Below are positions 14,181 through 61,845 of a DNA stretch of 64,000 nt, one piece after another. The notes under the pieces were generated by a model. That model had not been told where the DNA came from. It worked only from the letters and a program-made list of their open reading frames with translations, and did no database searches. Position numbers and translations under genes: made by a program. Origin of the DNA: Octopus sinensis (taxonomy: Eukaryota); the NCBI RefSeq assembly GCF_006345805.1, contig NC_043013.1, forward strand, positions 51,274,001 to 51,338,000, read 5' to 3'. Every line of letters starts with the position of its first letter. The stretch's first letter is position 1.

Positions 14181-14425
14181 ATGCAACTACCTCAATATGT
14201 GAATGAAAACAGTTTAGTGTTTGTCTGACAGAAGAGATCGTAGGGTCTAACTGCGTGCATGCAAAACATTGAGCACATTTCCTGAGATAGGCTGAGATAA
14301 GGCCTCCGTGACATACCAAATGTCTAAAGCAAGTATACCATGTCAGCAGCAATATGAAATGCTTTTATAAATGGCGTCACATAATAAATGCTTAAAATAT
14401 ATACATTTGATATTTTTTTCATCTG
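14181..14425 (+). repeat. Left arm of a 245-bp perfect inverted repeat
   Basis: Exact reverse complement of 16283-16527 by reading; ORF translations agree. Confidence 0.92.
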
Positions 14426-16171: not shown

Positions 16172-16680
16172 GGCGTAGGCATGGCTGTGTGGTAATAAGC
16201 TTACTTCCCAAACACGAGATTCTGGGTTCAGCTCCACTATGTGGCTTCTTGGATAAGTCTCTTATTCTAGTTTCGAGCCGACCAGATGAAAAAAATATCA
16301 AATGTATATATTTTAAGCATTTATTATGTGACGCCATTTATAAAAGCATTTCATATTGCTGCTGACATGGTATACTTGCTTTAGACATTTGGTATGTCAC
16401 GGAGGCCTTATCTCAGCCTATCTCAGGAAATGTGCTCAATGTTTTGCATGCACGCAGTTAGACCCTACGATCTCTTCTGTCAGACAAACACTAAACTGTT
16501 TTCATTCACATATTGAGGTAGTTGCATGGATTTGGTAGAAGGAAACAGAAAGAAACCCGTCCTGTGTGTGGCACGCGAGCGTCTTCATTTCTGTGTTTGT
16601 TTCCTACCAATAGGAACAGTGGGGTCGATATAATGGGTTTGCCCCTAACCGCAAACCTCTTGGCTTTTTGCCAAAAATTA
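16172..16680 (+). mobile_element. SINE family A split by the inverted 245-bp insertion (16283-16527)
   Basis: Head ends gagccgac(ca) and resumes at ggatttggtag. Confidence 0.85.
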
Positions 16681-19559: not shown

Positions 19560-21592
19560 TAGATATGAATACTATACTCCAGAGTATCCTGGACTCAATA
19601 TGGGCAGCATGTGCAGCATCAGTGCCACGTAAACAAAAAAAGAAGAACCGCCCCAAAAGGGCAATTTGGGAAACTTCAGCGGTCCGACTTGCCAGGAAGG
19701 AACATCGGACTGCTGAACAGGAATACAAGTTGCATAAATCAGACACCAACAGGAAGAAGCGGAATAAATCCTCCAACCATCTCAAGCAAGTGACAAAAAA
19801 TGCAGTGCTTGAATTTGAACAGTGCATAGCAGCCAATCCTGACAGCAAGGTTTTCTGGAAATATGTGCATTCAAAGCAGAGACCTCACTCTCCAGTGGGC
19901 CCTCTTCGCAACCCTCACACGAACCAGATCACTGACGACCCCAAGGAATGCGCAGAACTCATTGCCGAGTGCTATGCAAACATATTCACTGTCGAAAGTC
20001 AAAATGTACCATCTTCACCATCACTAACAGCAAACTCCATAACAACTATGGAATTTACACTGCAATGCTGCGACGTCACCTTCAAAATAAGCACAACTAT
20101 GCCTCCCCTGGTCTCGATGGAGTTACATACCTGCTTCTCAAACGTGGCAGGCACTTCCTTTTACACTAGCTTTCTATTTTCTTCCAGTACTGTCTCAACA
20201 ATGGTGCTACTCCGGAGCAGTGGAAAACTGCCAGTGTCATTCCTCTGTTCAAAAAGGGTGACCGCACATCACCTGTCAACTATCGCCCAGTCAGTCTCAC
20301 TAGCTGTATTGCAAAACTGATGGAATCGTGTGTCAGAGAAACACTCTGGAACTTCTGGAGCTCTCACAGTCTCATCCGACCCTCACAATATGGATTTGTC
20401 CCTAACTCCAGCTGCAGTGACCAGCTTGTCGAGTTCCTTGAGGACATTACTCAAATCACTGACAGTGGCTCATGGGTGGATGTTGTCTACCTTGACTTTG
20501 CTAAGGCTTTCAACTCTGTGCCACACAAAAGGCTTATGGTGAAACTCTCTGCAATGGTGTGGGGGGATGACCTTTTTAACTGGTTGAAATCCTTCATCCT
20601 CAGCCGAAAGGAGGTAGTCACAGTTCTAGGACAGCACTCTACACCATATGAGATGTCATCGGGTGTACCACAGGGATCTGTCCTTGGTCCCCTCCTGTTT
20701 GTGGCATACATTAATGACATAGATGCCAATTTAAAGAATGCCACAGTATTGAAATATGCAGACGACATCAAGCTGTACCTTGAAATCAAGAGGACTGATC
20801 CTGATGTCTACAACTCTTTCCTGCAATCAGACCTAGACACAATGCAGCAATGGATCACAGACTGGCAACTGAAACTGGCTGTGGACAAGTGTACCACCAT
20901 GCATTTTGGGAGAAAAAACCCTGCGTCCACATACTCCCTCCACAACACTGATATCAAGAAATCCTCTTGCGAGCGTGATTTGCGTTGGACAAAGCATATC
21001 TCTAAAATTGTCAAGAAGGCCGAGGGTGTCTTGGCATCACTCAGCAAGACTTTTGTTAGCCGCTCTCCAGCCATCTATTTAAAACTGTATACAGCTATGG
21101 TCCGACCACACTTGGAATTCGCATCATCAGTTTGGAATCCCTATCTTGCTCAGAACATTGACCTCCTGGAATCTGTCCAGAGACGTGCAACCAAACGCAT
21201 ACCCTCCATCAGACACCTACCATATTCTGAGCGCCTTGTTTCCCTGGGCATGGATTCACTGAAGCTCCGGCGTCTGGCGACGGACTTGGTAAGCACCCAC
21301 AAGGTTATCAACCACCTCACCAACAACAACACTGAACACCTTTTTGATCTCCATGTGTCTAACACACGTGGACATGCCTACAAAGTCAGAAAACAGCACA
21401 GCTCCCATGACTTTCGGAAACATTTTTTCACGCTCAGGGTTGCTGAAGCGTGGAATAAACTGCCTGCATCAGTTGTTGACTGCCATGACACTGCATCCTT
21501 TAAGGCCCTCATGCTTCCCGAAACCCGTCGAAACTACACCTGATTATATATACACTTTAGATGAGTTGTAGTGCACCTGAGCACTGTACACA

Positions 21593-22133: not shown

Positions 22134-23833
22134 AATAATAGAAATATTAAAATTACTAAGTCTCTCTAAAAGAGAACAACGGCAGCGTTCCCGGAAAATA
22201 TTAGTTATCGCCATACTAATATGGCATTCTTATAAAAATAAGAAAAAAGCTGACCGCTTATTAGCTCCATGAGGCCATCGCCTTAAGTTAGCTATTTGAT
22301 ACACAATCTGTATCCATATAACCTTTGAACAAGGGAGGTCAGTCGCTCCACACTACTTGGCCGGCAGCTACAGACGCGTTTCGGGGTATTGCCCCTTTTC
22401 AATGCAGCGTAGCCAAACCAGTAGGTGTCGCTTCCGACAATCTCTGTTCAAAGGTTTTATTTACCTAGCTTCGGTGGAATACATCCACTTGTTTTCAATA
22501 ATAGAAATATTAAAATTACTAAGTCTCTCTAAAAGAGAACAACGGCAGCGTTCCCGGAAAATATTAGTTATCGCCATACTAATATGGCATTCTTATAAAA
22601 ATAAGAAAAAAGCTGACCGCTTATTAGCTCCATGAGGCCATCGCCTTAAGTTAGCTATTTGATACACAATCTGTATCCATATAACCTTTGAACAAGGGAG
22701 GTCAGTCGCTCCACACTACTTGGCCGGCAGCTACAGACGCGTTTCGGGGTATTGCCCCTTTTCAATGCAGCGTAGCCAAACCAGTAGGTGTCGCTTCCGA
22801 CAATCTCTGTTCAAAGGTTTTATTTACCTAGCTTCGGTGGAATACATCCACTTGTTTTCAATAATAGAATATAAAATTACTAAGTCTCTCTAAAAGAGAA
22901 CAACGGCAGCGTTCCCGGAAAATATTAGTTATCGCCATACTAATATGGCATTCTTATAAAAATAAGAAAAAAGCTGACCGCTTATTAGCTCCATGAGGCC
23001 ATCGCCTTAAGTTAGCTATTTGATACACAATCTGTATCCATATAACCTTTGAACAAGGGAGGTCAGTCGCTCCACACTACTTGGCCGGCAGCTACAGACG
23101 CGTTTCGGGGTATTGCCCCTTTTCAATGCAGCGTAGAGAGACTTAGTAATTTTAATATTTCTATTATTGAAAACAAGTGGATGTATTCCACCGAAGCTAG
23201 GTAAATAAAACCTTTGAACAGAGATTGTCGGAAGCGACACCTACTGGTTTGGCTACGCTGCATTGAAAAGGGGCAATACCCCGAAACGCGTCTGTAGCTG
23301 CCGGCCAAGTAGTGTGGAGCGACTGACCTCCCTTGTTCAAAGGTTATATGGATACAGATTGTGTATCAAATAGCTAACTTAAGGCGATGGCCTCATGGAG
23401 CTAATAAGCGGTCAGCTTTTTTCTTATTTTTATAAGAATGCCATATTAGTATGGCGATAACTAATATTTTCCGGGAACGCTGCCGTTGTTCTCTTTTAGA
23501 GAGACTTAGTAATTTTAATATTTCTATTATTGAAAACAAGTGGATGTATTCCACCGAAGCTAGGTAAATAAAACCTTTGAACAGAGATTGTCGGAAGCGA
23601 CACCTACTGGTTTGGCTACGCTGCATTGAAAAGGGGCAATACCCCGAAACGCGTCTGTAGCTGCCGGCCAAGTAGTGTGGAGCGACTGACCTCCCTTGTT
23701 CAAAGGTTATATGGATACAGATTGTGTATCAAATAGCTAACTTAAGGCGATGGCCTCATGGAGCTAATAAGCGGTCAGCTTTTTTCTTATTTTTATAAGA
23801 ATGCCATATTAGTATGGCGATAACTAATATTTT
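22134..23833. mobile_element. Retrozyme/Penelope-like 363-bp tandem array with a central inversion, flanked by (TA)n
   Basis: Forward units start 22134, 22497, 22860; switch at 23134-23136; inverted units start 23169, 23532; near-identical copies. Confidence 0.85.
22368..22412 (-). ncRNA. Hammerhead-like motif with non-canonical core (copies: 22731-22775 and 23092-23136 minus; 23253-23297 and 23616-23660 plus)
   Basis: CTACG-CTGCATTGAAAA-GGGG-CAATA-CCCC-GAAAC-GC-GT-C-TGTAG. Confidence 0.6.
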
Positions 23834-35463: not shown

Positions 35464-36696
35464 CATCCCATAAATAATGCAGTTTATTCAATTGCATGAA
35501 GTAAAAGTCGGAAGGGGAGGGGGAAAATACCTGCATCGATTTGTTATAAAAGCAGGTAGTAATGTTACCTTGTACTTATTCCTAGTTTTGAAGATTCCAG
35601 TACGATTTTAACGGTTATTTTTCCAAAGCCATAATGGAAGTCACAAAGGGGCATATTCGGTATATTTTGCTTTATGAGTTCAATAAAGGCAAAAACGCAA
35701 CGGAAAGTACGAGGAATATTAATGCAGTATAAAGCGGATCGGACAGTAAGTGTAAACCAATGTCAACGATCCAGAAATTCCCAGCCGAAAACTACAGCCT
35801 AGAAGACGAGCCTCGTCCTGGAAGAGCTGTAGAGATAGACGAGGATGTTCTACCAACCCTGGTGGAACAAAATCCCACCGAAACTGTTGAGGAACTAGCA
35901 GACTGGCTTGGATTTGATTATTCAACCATTTATCAACACCTGCGTGCCATCGGAAAAGCCAGCAAATTAGGTCAGTGCGTTCCTCAAAAACTTTCCGGAT
36001 CTATTCGCGCTCAGAGAGTGAATGTGTGCTCTTCTTTGCTGCCACGTCTCACCAATGAACCCTTTTTGGACCGAAGAGTGATCGGTGACGATAAATGGGT
36101 TCTCTATAAAAATGTCAAGTGCCGAAGACAGTGGGTAGGGAAAGGAGAAAGACAAACACCCCAGGCTAATAAAGGTCTTCAACCACGTAAGCTGTTGTTA
36201 TCTGTTTGGTGGGATATAAAAGGTTTAGTCCACTTTGAATTTTCAAACCCAAACCAAATGATAACAAAGGAGATCTACTGCGAGCAACTTGAGCGGCTAG
36301 AAGAACAACCATCTTTGGTTTCAAAATGAAAGATGTTCTTCCATCAGGATAATACTCGGCCACGTACCTCAGGGAAGATATTCCAAAGGCTGGAGCAGTT
36401 TGAATGGGAAACGATGCCCCTACCTACCATATTAACCGGACATTGCCCCATCTCATTATGATTTATTCAACAGTCTTCAAAATGATTTGGACGGAAAAAA
36501 TATGAATTCTGTAGACGAGGTCAGAACAGTAGTGAAGGAGTATTTTTTGTCACGGACAAGTAAAATTTGGAAGAGGGGTCTTGCAAGTCTACCAGATAGA
36601 TGGAGAATATATATTTTAGATTAAAAAAGAAATCTGCTTATCTTAATTTTGAAAAGTAAAAGTATAAAAAACGTGTTATTTATGGGATGACTCAGT
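35458..36696 (+). mobile_element. Full-length defective mariner (DD34D) transposon
   Basis: TIRs ttggatcatcccataaataa / ttatttatgggatgactcag in TA context; ATG 35634; GDDKW (D 36087), HQDN (D 36348), PDIAPSH (third D to H, 36454); stops and frameshifts. Confidence 0.93.
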
Positions 36697-39176: not shown

Positions 39177-39714
39177 TCTAGCAAACCTTACCACGCAGCC
39201 GTCTATATAAGATATACACACACATGTATATGTGTTTGTGAGTATGTGTGTGTATAGTAAGTATATATTGCATATACGTATATGCTTAGACATTCATGGG
39301 TTCACAGAGCATGATGGTATATAAATTAATCTGGTATATGTTATTCAGCATCAATAAATGATTGATGAGGCCCATGTGTATAGGCAGGATGTGATAGAGC
39401 TGTGCAGGCCGGGTCAAAGGTAAGTATGAGGAGCAAACAGATGTTTGTCAATCGGATATTCTCTCAAAACTAACAAGGAGTGTATGTGCCGTATTTACCT
39501 GCCCTTAGCTCTTACTTGAATTTCTTAAATTTAATCCCAAGGCAGAAAATCTGGTAAACCGATTAAGCATATTTGAAAATGGACTTTTTCATTACCGAAA
39601 TTTATATAAAAGAAAGTTATTTTCAATTACTTTGCGTGTACGTGTGTGTGTGTGTGTGTGGATGTGCAAGTGTGTTAGAGTTTGCACGTGAGGGTGTGTG
39701 TATAAATGTGTATG

Positions 39715-39760
<46 letters not shown>

Positions 39761-39849
39761 TATATATATATATACACATATATATATATGCATATATACA
39801 TATATACATATATACATACACATTTATATACATAAATATATATATACAT

Positions 39850-39880
<31 letters not shown>

Positions 39881-39929
39881 TATATATATATATGTAAGTA
39901 TATATACATATGTATATGCCCCAACTCTC

Positions 39930-41090
39930 TTTTCTTTGTACTTTGCTGCTGCTTTTACTCATGCTTTTGCTAAGGTTAGCTCTCTGGGAATATATGTCAG
40001 ATATCGATCTTCTGGCCGCCTCTTTAATCTTCGCCGATTTGCTGCCAATTCAAAGGTTTCCCAGTCTAATATTCGTGACCTCCTTTATGCAGATGACTGT
40101 GACTTAGTCACTCATACAGTGGATGACATGCAAATACTCATGAATTGCATTTCTGCTTCTTGCAGGGCATTTGGACTCAGCATTAGCCTGGGCAAGACTG
40201 TTGTAATGTTCTAGCCTGCACCAGGAAATCCATATATAGAACCAGCTATCTTGGTTGAAGGAACAATTCTGAAGGTAGTAGACAAGTTTGTCTACCTGGG
40301 CAGCACACTCAGCCGTTCTTACTCCCTGGATGAGGAAATATCTTTCAGGTTGCAGAGAGCAACTAATTCCTTCCGGTCTCTTCAGTTTCGTGTCTGGTTC
40401 CAACATGGCATCGCAAGGAGAACAAAAGTTGCTGTGTACCATGCTTGCGTACTGACATCGCTTCTCTACTCATGTGAGACATGGACTCCGTACAAACGTC
40501 AGGTAAGGGTACTTGAACGTTTTCATCAGAGATGTCTCAGACACATTCTCAATGTTGGCTGGACCTCAAAAATTCCAGACACACAGATCCTAAGGACAGC
40601 TGATATCTTGAGTATTGAGGCGATGGTGCACAAGCACCGGTTACGTTATTAGAATGAAGGATAGAAGAATTCCTAAGCAGATACTCTATGGAGAACTTGT
40701 GATTGGAAGGAGACTCCGGCAGAAACCAAGGCTGCGATTTAAGGACTGTGTCAAGTCCTCATTAAAGGCCTGTGATATGCAGAACACTGACTGGGAGAAC
40801 AATGCCTGTCATCGCCACAGATGGAGGAAGCAGGTTAAGGAGGGGATCGACACTTTTGAGAGAGCACGTATCCAGCATGAAGAACTTAAGCGAGCTGCGC
40901 GAAAGCGCACGGCTCGTATAGTGAATGGGGAAAGCTTGGTCTGCAATGTTTGCAGTCGTCTATGTTTGTCAAGTGCAGGGCTCATTAGCCACCAACGGAG
41001 CCGAAAATGCAAAATATAAGTTAGTCCTAGAGCGCACAATGTTCCTGAAGGTCGTTAATGGTCTTCCTCGGTCACGAGTGGACTGCCATC
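39930..41090 (+). mobile_element. 5'-truncated RTE (BovB-like) LINE: RT C-terminus plus C-terminal Cys/His motif
   Basis: [14 protein letters not shown] at 40086-40097, KFVYLGS, LLYSCETW, LRFKD, CNVC...SH; stop at 40212 and frameshift ~40650. Confidence 0.92.
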
Positions 41091-41164
41091 ATATATATAT
41101 ATATATAATTCAATTTGCAACAGTGGATCTCGAACCGCAGAAATCTATAAGTGTTACATATATA

Positions 41165-41410
41165 CATATATACATATATACGACGAACTACTTTCCGTTT
41201 CCGTCTATCTAATCCACTCACAAAGCTTTGGTCGGCCCAGGGATATAATAGATAACATTTACCCAAGGTGCCAGGCAGTGGGTCTGAACCCGGAACCCTG
41301 TGTTTGGGAAGCAAGCTTTTTACCACACAACGAGTATATTTTATTTATTTTATTTTATTTTATTTTATCTAGTTTCAGCTCACGAGCTGTGGCCATGCTG
41401 GGGCACCGCC
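41165..41410 (-). mobile_element. SINE family A head and separate tail fragments
   Basis: Reverse complement matches. Confidence 0.7.
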
Positions 41411-41839
41411 ATTCGGTGCTGCTACATGATTTTACTTCACGAATGCATTTTAGCAATTGACATTTGGTGCATGAGAGAGTTAGATGCAGCTTCCCTCGTC
41501 TGCACCTCCTGCCGTGAAGTTGGTTCATCTGGGACACCTGACAGGAAGAGGTCCAGCTTTATTTTAAATATATGTTTATTATTTGTAATGTATATTATTT
41601 GTAATTCCAAGATTTATATAATATATAAATCTCGGCTGAAGTGTATTTCTCCCTCTGTCTGTCTCCTTGTCTCTGTCCCACATATATGTGCACATACATC
41701 TACAGGTATTTATTATCATATTTATGCAATTAGGTGGGATTGAACTGAAAACTACATGGTTGAGAAGCTAGCTTTGTTACTGTCAGCGTATTGGTTTCCA
41801 TGTGAATTCAGAATAAAATCAGTGATTGTAAGGATACAT

Positions 41840-42363: not shown

Positions 42364-42868
42364 ATTATATATATATATATATATATAATATATATGTGTG
42401 TGTGTGTGTGGTCTGTGTGTGTGTGTGTGTATGTATGTGTGTGTGTGTATGAATGTATATTCCACTTTTACACCGACCATGCGATCAGATGTTGTAACAC
42501 ATCGCTGATCAATGCGCTTTGCATCGTTTTAGCTTTCAAATGATGCTACCCTGCTGCTTAGGTAAGTCAATATATAATATATATATATATATATACTAAT
42601 ATATATATTATATATATATAAAATGTATATATATATATAATGTATATATATATATATATATAATATAAATATAATGTATATATATATATATATATATATA
42701 TAGATATATATATAGTATGTATGTATTTTTTATATATATATATATATGTATGTATGTTTTTTTATATATATATATATTTTTATATACTAATATATTTATG
42801 TATATATATATATGTACATATAGAAATATATAGATATATAGACACACACACACACACACACACACACC

Positions 42869-42968
42869 NNNNNNNNNNNNNNNNNNNNNNNNNNNNNNNN
42901 NNNNNNNNNNNNNNNNNNNNNNNNNNNNNNNNNNNNNNNNNNNNNNNNNNNNNNNNNNNNNNNNNNNN
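42869..42968. other. Assembly gap (100 N)
   Basis: N run. Confidence 0.99.
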
Positions 42969-43722
42969 TGGTCGCTTGACTGTGCAGGGGCGACCTAAGA
43001 GAGCAGTACGCTATGAAGTGTGGAAGTCCATTGTTGGTGACGTGCATGGAAAGGTAAACATGCAACGCTACGTCCAGAGACAATAAAAAATTGTCATGCA
43101 GATCTGATGACCATGGGCTCTGTAAACGATGCAAGAAATGGCCGTCCAACAACTCCTCGATCAGCGGAGACGTGGCAATAGTACAGGAAATGTTTAATCG
43201 CAGCCAGCAAAAATCAATAGGTCAAGCAGCTCATGATAGTGGACTAATAAGACACACAATACATACGGTTTTGCATAAAGAATTGAAATTTTGTCTGTAG
43301 AAACTCCATTACGTGATGGAGCTAAAACCTGAAGACTGTGGCCACAGAAGTCCAGAAGTCCAAGAAGTCCATAAGTCCAAGAAGTCCAGAAGTCCAAGAA
43401 GTCCAGATCTCACTCTATGTGATTTTTACGTGTGGGGTTACACAAAAGAAGAGGTGTACAAAACAAAATCCCGCACACTGGAGGACTTGGACAAACGGAT
43501 GCAGGATAAACTAGACGACGTCCTTCATAAGATCGTTCATTCCATCCTTGGCTGTTTGAGGAAACTTGTTGATGCCACCGGTGCTTACATTGAAATATGA
43601 AGATTTACTTTCATTTTGACATGTAATAAAGAACATATATCATTTGTTTGAATAAATTTGTAAAAGGAACATGGATTTTATTACTAATTTTTAATGCCTA
43701 CTTACATTTCACTCACACTGCA
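42969..43722 (+). mobile_element. Internally deleted Tc1/mariner element (rosa/DD41D-like)
   Basis: QEMFNRSQQKSIGQAA..SGL.RHTIHTVLHKELK joined to PRSPDLTLCDFYVWGY.KEEVY; end ...tcactcacactg. Confidence 0.75.
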
Positions 43723-44479
43723 TATACATATTACATATACATGAATAGAGAGAGAAAAAAATAAAGAGAGTGAGAGAGACGCGGAGATATATGTATATCT
43801 ATGCATGTATATATATATGAACATACATGCACGATGTTTAACTGAATATGATCGGGACTGTGTCTAAACTTCGCAGAGTAGCCGTTTGACACAGTTGACC
43901 TTGAACTCTGCTGCGCATACTCAGTAAGTTATGAGGCTGTTGCTCACTTTCGTTGTTTATTGTAGTGCTTGGAAGTAAAGTTTGTAGAGTGTGGTAGTCT
44001 CGACACACGGCAGGGGTTGCGTCAGTGACTATGGCGGAGAAATTGGATTGATGTATATTTTGTCCTACCTTCGATTTATCGATGCGGTGAGCGTATGCAT
44101 CCTTGAGGGTGGGTGCGGTCTCGCGTGCATCGGTCGTGTATGTGTGAAGTTGCGTACACGGGAGTGATGTGTGATCGGCTTGAATGTGCGGAGTTTGCTA
44201 CGAATCGTTGGTGGACCATCGTGATGAATGGGGCCCATATACGTGTAGTGATGGGGTTCCCTTCGCCATGCACGATTGTACCTGTGTGGCAGTCTCCATG
44301 TGTACATTCGCGCACGGGTATACATGCGTGGGGCACACGCGCACGGCATGTGCGTGTGCCCCCTCACATGTACATATGCATGCTTGCTGGGCTCGATAAG
44401 TGCAACAGTATGTTCGCGCCCGCACTCATGCAGATGGGTGAATTGCACAACTAAAATACGCACACGTGTGTGTGTTGCG

Positions 44480-45900
44480 TTTTTTGGTTGGTAGTTTGTT
44501 ATCTGTGTGAGAGGAGTGGGTGTGAGCGTATTGTTGTGTATGTCGGGTGTTGGTACGTATGTATATGGGTGTGTGTGGGGTGTACGTAGTGTTGTGTGTG
44601 TGTGTTTTGCGTATGTGTGTTTGTGTGTGGATGTAATGTGTGTGGATTACTATGTGGGTGTGTATTGTGTATGGTGGGGGGAGTTTTGTCATTGTATGTG
44701 TGTGGGTTTCATTTGTCATGGTGGTTTGTTGGTGATTTGTGGTAGGTCTGTATATTTGGGTTGATTATGTATTGTTCTGTGTGTGCAATTGTATACATGC
44801 ATGATTGGTGTGCGTGGGATTGCGCCCATTTTTGGGGATGTATGTGTTTATTTGTCTGTGTGGGGGGGAGTGGGTTTTTGGTGTATATATTGAGGTTTAT
44901 ACGTATGTATAGGTATGTGTGAGTGAGGTGGGGTATTTGTATATGTCGTGGGTGTGTGGTTTACGTGTGTGTATTGTTGTGTGAATGTATAGGTTAGGGG
45001 GATTGCTATATAGGTATGTTATAGAGTTTAGTAAAGGAGGTTTTATCATTATATGTATTTATGAGTTTAGTTTATCATGGTTGTTTATTAAAGAATTCGT
45101 AGTAATTTATGTCTATTTACGATGTTTGTTATTTTATTACATTATTCCATTCATAATTTTTAAGTAATGTTCGTTTACCACGTGAATATAATTTTTAATT
45201 CCATTTATTCCATTTCTCCATTCATAATTTTAAATGACGTTCGTTTCCAGAGCGCGAATACTTTTTATACATATGTTAGGTTCCTATGGTAACGTATTTT
45301 ATATATCGTATTATGTGTAGTAATGTTGTTTTTCTTTTGAGTGTTTATGTATGTGTGAATGTGTGTGTGTGTGCGTATTTTAGTTGTGTAATTTATTTAT
45401 CTGTATGAGTGTGGGTGTGAAAATATTGTTGTATATATCGAGTTTAGTAAGTATGTATTTGTATATGTGAGGGGGTATACGTATATGTTGTGTGTGTGTG
45501 TTTTACGTATGTATATTTGTGTGTGAATGTGTATATGGGATTGTGTATATGTGTAATTGTGTATGGTAGGGGGAGTTTTATCATTATATGTATGTGGGTT
45601 TCATTTATCATGATGGTTTATTGGTGTTTTGTAGTAGATTCTGTATATTTAAGTTGATTATATATTATTCCATTCATAATTTAAAAAAAAAAACGTTCGA
45701 TCACCACGTGCAAAGAATTGTTTATTTTGCTTTTGAGTGTTTATGTATGTGTGAATGTGTGTGTGTGTGTGTGTGGATTATTTGCGTAATTTATTTATCT
45801 GTATAGATGTGGGTGTGAATATATTGGTGTATATATCGAGTGCTGTATGTTTGTATATGTATGTGTGAGCGGGTATACGTATATTGTTTATGAATGTGGG
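44480..45900. repeat. Degenerate ~400-bp GT-rich tandem repeat, ~4 units
   Basis: ggagtttt(a/g)tcatt(a/g)tatgt and tt(a)tctgt..gtgggtgtga blocks recur at ~44500, 44850-45040, 45390-45580, 45790. Confidence 0.65.
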
Positions 45901-47540
45901 TTGTATGTGTGTGTGGGGAGTATGAATAAGTATTGTGTTGAAGTATTTGGCTATTTTATTTATTTATCGTTGCTTAGACATTTTTATGTGTATGTATAGG
46001 GATATATATATAGGTGTGTGACTTAGTGTATGTATTTAGATATGGTTATATATAATTAGTTATATGTGTATGGGTGTATATATAGTTTATTTTTATTTGT
46101 TTTATATTTAATTGTTGATAGGTTCATTTTAGTTTATATATTGATTTATATGGATTATATATAGGTATATATAGATTATATATTTATATTTTTTCATTGA
46201 TACTTTAATTATTTTAAAATTATTTTTTATACTTATATTTTAAAATATTGATATTTTAGATCGGAAATCCACCTGAATATTGTCGATCAAGACATGAAAC
46301 AATTGCAGTGGCGGTTTTTTTACTCTTTATTAAAATTTTATGTATTGATTAAGTCTTTCCTTGTGTTTTGCAAAATAGTGGTTTTGTCTCTAATTAATAT
46401 TATATAATATATATAGATATATATATAATATATATATGTACGCGTGTGTGAGTGCATTTGTGTGAGTGTGTGTGTGTTTTGTGTGTGTGTGTGTGTTGTG
46501 CATGTGTGTATGTATGTGTATGGGCACTTGCATATGGGGCTGTGTGTGTGTGAATGCAAGCGTGGAAAGATACATGGTGTAATGGTTATTACGGCCTAGA
46601 GTCTTTCCAAAACTGAAATCACACTTGAAAGGAACAAGATTTGAAGACAGGTATGGAATCCAAGAGAATGGAAAAGGACAGCTGCTCGTTAACCCCACCA
46701 AAAAGAAAAAAAAAGAAAGTTTCAGGAATATTTCCAACAATGGAAACGATGCTGGATACAATGTTTGGCGTCAGAAGAGGACCATTTCTTAGGCGATTAA
46801 ATCCCGAATTCGTTTGTGTGGTAGTTTTCTTTTGATAATACCAATCGAGATACATTTCGATCAAACCTCGTATACATATACATATATATTCACACATATA
46901 TCACACATACACATAAAATCATATTCCCAAGACTCTTTTTCAAATACGACCCGATACATATATCAACTTATGTAATGGAGACGGCGATCAGCATTTGACA
47001 CGACGCTATTAAAAATGTTTAAATTCCATATAGAATTAAAACACCACCAGCCTAACACCACACACATACACTCATCTTATATTAAGGACACAACAACGTT
47101 TATATTAATCACTATTTATCAAAATTTCTCATATATTCTTATTAGGCCGTTATGTTTAGTTGTGTGTTATTGCTAAATTCACTCGTTTGTTTGAAGACCT
47201 CCCAAGTCTCATCATCAGAGTGGCAATGTTGATGTATTGTTAATGTGTGTGGAGAACGACATGTGTGTGGGGACCAGCACGTCTGTGGGGTCTGGTATAT
47301 GTGTGTGTGTGTGTGGTGGGGTACCAGCGTGTCAAGGGACATACACAACATTTCCTCTGCGCGTCGTAAACATGAGACCAAATGAAGGAGGTTGAAGTAG
47401 GATTTGCCCTGCAACCTCGCAAAACCCTCGCTGGCAACGACTACCCAAAATAGACCCATACGTTGGAGGGTTGTCGCCTAAATGGTGCAAAGGCGCCCTA
47501 ATATGGTGGATGCAGCGACGCGATGTTACAGCTGATGGCC

Positions 47541-48909: not shown

Positions 48910-48926
48910 GATTATTATTATTATTA

Positions 48927-48987
<61 letters not shown>

Positions 48988-49037
48988 CATCATTATTATT
49001 ATTATTATTATCATTATTATTATTATCATTATCATCA

Positions 49038-49092
<55 letters not shown>

Positions 49093-49267
49093 CATCATTA
49101 TTATTATTATCATTATCATCATTATTATTATTATCATTATCATCATTATTATTATTATTATTATATTATTATTATTATTTTCATTATTATTATTACTATT
49201 ATTATTATTATTATTATTATTATTATCATCATTATATTATTATTATTTATTATTATTATTATTATCA

Positions 49268-49302
<35 letters not shown>

Positions 49303-49323
49303 TATCATCATTATTATTATTAC

Positions 49324-49358
<35 letters not shown>

Positions 49359-49389
49359 CATATTATTATTATCATTATTATTATTATTA

Positions 49390-49421
<32 letters not shown>

Positions 49422-49438
49422 TTCATTATTATTATTAC

Positions 49439-49506
<68 letters not shown>

Positions 49507-60460: not shown

Positions 60461-60566
60461 CGGTCGTGGCACGACCAAATCAAGATTTGTGACAATCGGT
60501 CGCGAAGAAGAGCAGAGCGGAGACACGAAAGGAATGGTTTTGCGATTAAGTGTGGTGCGTGTGTGC

Positions 60567-61080
60567 GTGTGTATCTGTCTGTGTGTCTGTGGGTGTTGTT
60601 TTGTATATGGGAGTGTGTGTGGGGAGGTGGGGGGTGGATGTAGTTGTGTGTATGAAGATGTGTGCGTATATGTGTGTGTGTATCTGTCTGTGTGTCTGTG
60701 GGTGTTGTTTTGTATATGGGAGTGTGTGGGGTGTGTGGATGTAGTTGTGTGTATGAAGATGTGTGCGTATATGTGTTTGTGTATCTGTCTGTGTGTCTGT
60801 GGGTGTTGTTTTGTATATGGGAGTGTGTGGGGTGTGTGGATGTAGTTGTGTGTATGAAGATGTGTGCGTATATGTGTTTGTGTATCTGTCTGTGTGTCTG
60901 TGGGTGTTGTTTTGTATATGGGAGTGTGTGGGGTGTGTGGATGTAGTTGTGTGTATGAAGATGTGTGCGTATATGTGTGTGTGTATCTGTCTGTGTGTCT
61001 GTGGGTGTTGTTTTGTATATGGGAGTGTGTGGGGTGTGTGGATGTAGTTGTGTGTATGAAGATGTGTGCGTATATGTGCG
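60567..61080. repeat. 101-bp minisatellite, 5 near-identical copies
   Basis: gtatctgtctgtgtgtctgtgggtgttgttttgtatatgggag at 60571, 60680, 60781, 60882, 60983. Confidence 0.95.
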
Positions 61081-61329
61081 TGTGTGTGTGTGTGTGTATG
61101 CATCTCGATGTCATTGTGTGTTGTGTGTGTTTCTGTGTGTATATCTGCGCGTATAGTTGTGTGGATGTGTGCGCGCGCGCGTGTTTGTCTGAAAAGTCAT
61201 AAATTTTACACAATTGCAAAATCTGGCATTTTCATTGTAAAAGATAGGCAAAACAATATCAACAAATAATAAAAAAAACAAATGTGAGATAAATACAAAC
61301 AACGGCAGTAATGAGAAAACAGACTATAA

Positions 61330-61363
<34 letters not shown>

Positions 61364-61459
61364 TAATAATAATAATATGATAATAATAATAATAATAATA
61401 ATAATAAAATAATAATATATAATAATAATGATAATAATAATGATAATTAATAATGATAA

Positions 61460-61502
<43 letters not shown>

Positions 61503-61503
61503 A

Positions 61504-61553
<50 letters not shown>

Positions 61554-61713
61554 TAATGATAATTAATAATAATAATAATAATAATATAATAATTATAATA
61601 ATGATAATAATGATAATAAAAATAATAATAATAATAATAATAATAACGATAATAATAATAATATAATAATATAATATAATGATAATAATAATAATAATAA
61701 TAATAATAATATG

Positions 61714-61750
<37 letters not shown>

Positions 61751-61767
61751 TAATAATAATAATAATG

Positions 61768-61845
<78 letters not shown>

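Follow-up and report, generated by a model that had tools for sequence, protein, structure and literature searches.

An inverted repeat in octopus genomic DNA carrying an A-to-G footprint like that of RNA editing on a hairpin transcript

A roughly 400-bp inverted repeat in the Octopus sinensis assembly (GCF_006345805.1, contig NC_043013.1) has over half of its adenines changed to guanine on one strand of both arms. This pattern is the mark of ADAR editing of a hairpin RNA, but here it is found in DNA; if confirmed by sequencing reads, it would mean that edited RNA, or the editing enzyme, has rewritten the genome. The stretch analysed, hereafter the window, comprises the 64,000 nucleotides from position 51,274,001 to 51,338,000 of the contig, and all coordinates below are counted from its first base. 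Five copies of a TG/TA-rich unit of about 370–400 bp lie at 44063–46010: four direct copies (A–D) and one inverted copy (I) directly abutting A (Table 1). A profile search with nhmmer on the actual bases found no further copies in the window.

Table 1. Coordinates of the repeat units and of other features of the window
Feature	Position	Strand	Description
Left hairpin arm (copy I)	44063–44468 (to 44476 as a repeat copy; nhmmer hit 44061–44475, minus strand)	+	Inverted copy of unit A plus the first ~50 nt of unit B; G on the + strand where the reverse complement of units A, B, C and D has A (about 74 sites in the part alignable with unit C, about 101 G:T pairs overall)
Hairpin apex	44465–44472	+	(CA)n/(TG)n centre of the palindrome with essentially no spacer; A-to-G change low in the ~40 adjacent columns (4 of 18 A's)
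Right hairpin arm (unit A)	44469–44869 (unit A as a repeat copy, 44455–44830)	+	Unit A plus the start of unit B; G where I (reverse complement), B, C and D have A (30–41 sites in the alignable part, about 59 T:G pairs overall)
Unit B	44812–45293	+	Diverged direct copy with an internal 71-bp duplication
Unit C	45358–45735	+	Unchanged direct copy closest to the inferred ancestor of both arms; serves as outgroup
Unit D	45754–46010	+	Partial, decayed direct copy sharing the A/T states of unit C
LINE reverse transcriptase ORF	20320–21543		RVT_1, E = 2.4e-30
Second LINE fragment	around 39.9–41.0 kb
Palindromic 363-bp satellite	22134–23833		675-nt arms, 100% complementary (perfect inverted repeat at 22195–23833); no G:T mismatch
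Perfect inverted repeat	14181/16283		245 nt; no G:T mismatch
Scaffold gap	1.1 kb upstream of the hairpin		100 N

A preliminary description of the locus had reported that one tandem unit differs from its siblings almost only by A-to-G, with 13 A/G differences among 25 A positions between 44665–44777 and 45557–45670. This observation is confirmed, and its extent is larger than first described. Realignment of exactly these stretches gives 12–13 differences (A in unit C, G in unit A) out of 25 A positions, the count depending on where the single gap is placed, with 1 indel, 1–2 other substitutions, no G-to-A in the opposite direction, and all three CA sites unchanged. The bias is not confined to that stretch, since the whole of unit A (44455–44830) aligned with unit C (45351–45682) shows it as well. 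The inverted copy I, which had been overlooked, carries even more A-to-G on the same (+) strand.

Copies I and A, together with the first ~50 nt of B, form an almost spacer-less palindrome. In a global alignment of reverse-complemented 44063–44468 with 44469–44869, scoring both transition directions equally, there are 224 Watson–Crick pairs, 160 G:T pairs on the + strand, 1 A:C pair, 9 transversion mismatches, and 19 gap columns; the binomial p for 160:1 is 1e-46. Every systematic difference between the arms is therefore a purine transition on the + strand. A more lenient hairpin alignment ran into noise beyond about 400 nt, and the bounded global alignment and the minimum free energy fold were used in its place. 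As RNA, the + strand folds into a single 371-pair hairpin (44063–44869) with 147 G.U pairs at -469.9 kcal/mol (z = -39 against shuffles), whereas the - strand reaches only -176 kcal/mol and forms no long hairpin. With the changes reverted, the hairpin folds at -556 kcal/mol.

The polarity of the changes rests on the relationships among the copies. The unit is alternating purine–pyrimidine low complexity, which makes transition-tolerant alignments permissive: a purine/pyrimidine (R/Y)-collapsed BLAST of unit C against the window matched every (TA)n, (TG)n and (CA)n tract and was uninformative. Homology is nonetheless secure, as I and C agree at 129 of 147 purine positions (odds ratio 130, p = 1e-23). 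I and A share a private 90-nt tail, with an R/Y-collapsed alignment score of 71 against 32 +/- 3.3 for shuffles, and neither arm's tail matches the tails of B or C. The arms also differ by few transversions, about 2.5%, compared with about 15% between B and the consensus. I is therefore the inverted duplicate of A, and B, C, and D are outgroups. Over 300 columns, the site patterns (I reverse complement, A, C) are (C,T,T) at 70 sites, (A,G,A) at 30, and (A,G,G) at 11, the last being ambiguous, while the reverse patterns (T,C,C) and (G,A,G) are absent. Hence A-to-G is derived in arm A, and T-to-C in unit orientation, which is A-to-G on the + strand of the window, is derived in arm I. Counted by arm in the three-way alignment, A has 30 A>G against 1 G>A, and I has 74 T>C against 0 C>T. 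Reverting the G of each G.U pair to A raises identity to unit C from 68.5% to 91.4% in the left arm and from 80.3% to 86.5% in the right arm.

The changes reach saturation. In the three-way alignable part, 104 of 198 ancestral + strand adenines are now G (53%), with 30/64 in A and 74/134 in I; in the folded hairpin, 147 G.U pairs against 114 A-U pairs give 147 of 261 paired adenines (56%). In an ADAR-edited inverted repeat of avian retroviruses, “nearly 50%” of adenosines were substituted (PMC12925331). The rate is even along both arms, at about 50–60% per 40-column bin (about 55–60% along the arms), and is reduced next to the apex. On the right-hand side, the only side with an outgroup for comparison, it falls in unit B beyond 44870 to a background of about 10% (A>G 1/15, 2/10, 2/13 and 2/10 per 60-nt bin), balanced by G>A. 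At 40 of 42 TA steps, at least one of the two staggered adenines is changed.

The 5′ neighbour order also matches ADAR. The changed fraction by 5′ neighbour is T 0.64 > A 0.56 > C 0.38 > G 0.31, and T/A versus C/G gives p = 0.001, although only 16 sites have a 5′ G. Upstream G depletion is universal for metazoan ADARs (PMC5625713). By 3′ neighbour the fractions are G 0.70 (only 10 sites), A 0.61, C 0.56, and T 0.45, with p = 0.06 for T against the rest; downstream, invertebrates favour A and mammals favour G (PMC5625713). Octopus has the highest hyper-editing rate and double-stranded RNA load among 19 species surveyed (PMC5625713).

The pattern is unique in the window. Self-BLAST and an anti-diagonal scan of all 64 kb found no other non-microsatellite repeat pair with strand-asymmetric transitions and few transversions, and the two perfect inverted repeats in Table 1 act as internal controls from the same assembly.

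These features together match saturating ADAR hyper-editing of a long hairpin RNA, and the following model is favoured, although only tentatively. In this view, a tandem array A-B-C-D acquired an inverted duplication of its first unit, which created the palindrome. A + strand transcript through it would have folded into a long, near-perfect hairpin, which ADAR deaminated to saturation in both arms. The edited sequence, with inosine read as G, would then have been copied back into germline DNA at the same locus, most likely through reverse transcription by one of the LINE enzymes of the genome, followed by cDNA- or RNA-templated conversion or repair of the fragile palindrome. What the sequence itself establishes is the hairpin, the exclusive + strand A-to-G polarity in both arms, the saturation, the coincidence with the duplex at its right-hand end, and the neighbour preference. 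That ADAR was the agent, that RNA was the substrate, that the locus is transcribed in a host with ADAR and inosine in its RNA, and the whole route back into DNA are inferred.

The interpretation in the preliminary description, that reverse transcription of, or repair templated by, an edited transcript wrote editing into the genome, is partly supported. The G-rich unit is indeed the derived one and its signature is ADAR-like, and two of the alternatives offered, CpA-to-TpA decay and TA/TG drift, are rejected by outgroup logic and by the 160:1 strand asymmetry. The RNA-to-DNA step remains inference, and the third alternative, consensus error, is not excluded. A reverse transcriptase source is present, but no poly(A) tail, target-site duplication or other retrocopy mark flanks the hairpin at 44063 or 44869, and the changed block continues in register into unit B. 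It is therefore not an ordinary retrocopy inserted by target-primed reverse transcription, and an in-situ conversion has to be invoked; no such event is known to have been documented for an animal nuclear locus. The evidence also comes from a single locus.

Among the rival explanations, an assembly or sequencing artefact is unlikely but the most serious. RNA-derived reads used in polishing or gap filling could have written genuine RNA hyper-editing into the reference only, which would explain the footprint with no RNA-to-DNA step, or a strand-specific base-calling error might have occurred on a fold-back palindromic read. The window is a scaffolded assembly with a gap close by, the locus is palindromic, of low complexity and hard to assemble, and the perfect palindrome at 22–24 kb might itself indicate fold-back artefacts. 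No independent copy of the locus was found by exact look-up of the I-arm, reverse transcriptase or mariner ORFs, by a homology search with the I-arm ORF, or by a degenerate 40-mer scan of metagenome contigs. However, unit C, with nearly the same sequence context on the same strand, is unaffected, and the perfect palindrome has no G:T mismatches, making a context-driven base-calling error unlikely; the 9 transversions and 19 indel columns between the arms are as expected for an aged genomic palindrome, and the changed block joins unit B in register. Direct deamination of deoxyadenosines in a DNA/RNA hybrid with antisense RNA, by ADAR or another adenosine deaminase, with dI fixed as G by replication, is less likely still. 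ADARs do deaminate dA in such hybrids in vitro with their usual sequence preferences (PMC5389660), and this route would give the same change type, single-strand pattern and neighbour order, in situ and without retrocopy marks. Yet efficient deamination in vitro needed dA-C mismatches or hyperactive mutant enzymes (PMC5389660), against about 55% of A's changed here, and a hybrid has no reason to end exactly where the inverted repeat ends or to spare the region next to the apex.

Strand-specific misincorporation is similarly improbable. A polymerase preferring G opposite template T, as Pol iota does and Pol eta does more weakly, might have resynthesised the + strand once during repair or replication restart, giving a high fraction of A-to-G in one contiguous ~800-nt tract centred on a breakage-prone structure. 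Such polymerases are distributive and are not known to synthesise ~800 nt, the tract end coincides with the duplex end and the change is reduced at the apex, the 5′ neighbour order matches ADAR, and the G:T mismatches would have to escape mismatch repair at about 160 sites. The mirror polarity, in which a GC-rich ancestral palindrome suffered C-to-T deamination (APOBEC/AID-like, RIP-like or 5mC decay) while B, C, and D lost the same bases independently, is very unlikely. One-strand G:T mismatches are equally produced by C-to-T, and TG-to-TA is the RIP dinucleotide on the opposite strand, but no rooting of the I/A/C tree makes all the changes C-to-T or G-to-A. The same 30 G's would have to be lost in both I and C while 65 others are kept in both (odds ratio 89, p = 2.6e-15; Mantel–Haenszel chi-square 50.6 when stratified by trinucleotide context), whereas under A-to-G the coincidences between changes in arm A and private changes in C are as expected by chance (p = 0.39). 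CpG decay cannot produce the TA state of B, C, and D from CG, these units are older than the I/A split by transversions, and RIP is not known in animals. Ordinary TA/TG drift, or a transcription- or replication-associated bias, is effectively refuted: the unit is TG/TA-rich and B, C, and D show scattered A<->G differences among themselves, but drift is symmetric (A>G 14 against G>A 12 in unit B), and known strand biases are far weaker than 160:1 and would not switch with arm orientation, saturate at about 55%, or stop at the duplex end. Snap-back cDNA synthesis as the origin of the palindrome was also rejected, since it would give perfectly complementary arms rather than G:T mismatches.

Several known systems share parts of this pattern. 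In ADAR-edited avian retroviruses, change that is A-to-G only, within an inverted-repeat region, is recovered as DNA because the edited RNA was reverse transcribed (PMC12925331), but that RNA is an obligate retro-element genome with its own reverse transcription and integration cycle, while the substrate here is a cellular tandem-repeat palindrome with no retro-element features, changed in place in a nuclear genome. ADAR hyper-editing of inverted-repeat transcripts in Metazoa, especially octopus, likewise involves long, near-perfect intramolecular duplexes, dense A-to-G clusters on both arms and upstream G depletion (PMC5625713, PMC4365171), but is defined as an RNA-versus-DNA difference, whereas here the G's are in the genomic sequence itself. 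Retroprocessing in plant mitochondria (PMC4987113) is analogous to the proposed route, but involves C-to-U editing, organellar genomes and coding genes, and is recognised through joint loss of introns and edit sites; no animal nuclear ADAR counterpart is known to be established. Models of deaminase-driven reverse-transcriptase mutagenesis and of ADAR as a DNA mutator (PMC11817618; bioRxiv 10.1101/2020.02.11.943845; in vitro basis PMC5389660) also propose that A-to-G changes reach DNA, through reverse transcription of edited RNA or editing of DNA/RNA hybrids, but are contested and based on sparse somatic mutations, whereas this locus would be a dense germline footprint of about 160 sites with an explicit double-stranded structure.

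Whether RNA edits can become heritable DNA changes is an old and contested question, as in reverse-transcriptase models of somatic hypermutation, the “hard-wiring” of editing sites, and the trade-off between editing and genome evolution in cephalopods. With about 160 diagnostic sites, a built-in outgroup (B, C, and D) and an explicit duplex, this locus is a clean test case, and it provides a simple genome-wide search criterion: inverted repeats whose arm mismatches are almost all G:T on one strand. It is possible, though still tentative, that a hyper-edited hairpin transcript in a cephalopod germline served, through cDNA or directly as RNA, as template for converting its own palindromic locus, hard-wiring about 160 edits into nuclear DNA in one event. 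This would be an animal nuclear counterpart of plant-organelle retroprocessing and direct evidence that RNA editing can feed back into the genome and defuse long palindromes and dsRNA sources. If real, it also suggests how genomes neutralise long perfect palindromes and immunogenic dsRNA sources in one step, since the DNA arms are now only about 57% complementary, yet the + strand RNA can still fold through G.U pairs. The lower complementarity should stabilise the palindrome, so edited palindromes may be the ones that persist, although this is inference.

The window is eukaryotic and repeat-rich, with about 36% GC, very long microsatellites, and a mariner transposase remnant; with its LINE reverse transcriptase and mariner remnant it is metazoan in content. 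Rfam and tRNA scans of the window found nothing, and Pfam searches of the flanking ORFs at 43058–43597, 46622–47477, and 41059–41740 gave no significant match, although 43410–43598 might encode a Tc1/mariner-type transposase C-terminus. The best named match of the LINE reverse transcriptase is an Octopus sinensis protein, at 73% identity over 57% of the query; the other named hits are CR1-type elements of birds and turtles at 33–38% identity, apart from one crayfish and one fish protein.

The 363-bp satellite is arranged as a perfect palindrome, in which about three direct copies are followed by about two inverted copies, and its inverted-repeat arms are 675 nt long, 100% complementary, and 289 nt apart. 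It lies just downstream of the first pair of LINE ORFs and represents either a very young fold-back duplication or an assembly artefact; it was used here as an unedited control. A further inverted repeat, perfect over 245 nt, flanks about 1.86 kb of largely microsatellite sequence and could correspond to the terminal inverted repeats of a DNA transposon or foldback element.

Sequences related to mobile elements occur at several positions. Two adjoining ORFs (251 and 407 aa) belong to a CR1-like LINE; the second carries an RVT_1 domain (E = 2.4e-30), and its best named relative is an Octopus sinensis protein at 73% identity, making this element a possible source of reverse transcriptase. A second LINE fragment shows a weak RVT_1 match (YADD motif region) followed by two overlapping C-terminal ORFs, and it ends about 3 kb upstream of the hairpin formed by the G-rich repeat unit and its inverted copy, in the same orientation. 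A mariner-type transposase remnant was identified by its Pfam Transposase_1 match (E = 6e-20). Other ORF fragments, interrupted by a (CAGAAGTC)n microsatellite, might resemble the C-terminus of a Tc1/mariner-type transposase, although a Pfam search of these fragments gave no significant hit.

Coordinates of additional features in the window
Feature	Position	Strand
Perfect 245-nt inverted repeat	14181-14425 and 16283-16527	
CR1-like LINE, two adjoining ORFs	19565-21543	+
Palindromic 363-bp satellite	22134-23833	
Inverted-repeat arms of the satellite	22195-22869 and 23159-23833	
Mariner-type transposase remnant	35760-36329	+
Second LINE fragment	39573-41019	+
(AT)138	42570-42840	
Run of 100 N	42869-42968	
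ORF fragments, possibly Tc1/mariner-type	43058-43598	+
(CAGAAGTC)n microsatellite	43345-43407	
(ATT)187 followed by (TAA)14	48911-49506	
G/T-rich tandem repeat	60562-61097	
(ATA)176	61326-61845	

The run of N is exactly 100 long, marks a scaffold gap 1.1 kb upstream of the hairpin, and sits next to the (AT)138 tract and (AC)13. The (ATT)187 tract followed by (TAA)14, and the (ATA)176 tract, are very long trinucleotide microsatellites. The G/T-rich, C-poor tandem repeat has a period of 101/202 bp, with copies 94-97% identical, in a block with a GC skew of +0.54; the self-comparison flagged no strand-asymmetric transitions among its copies.
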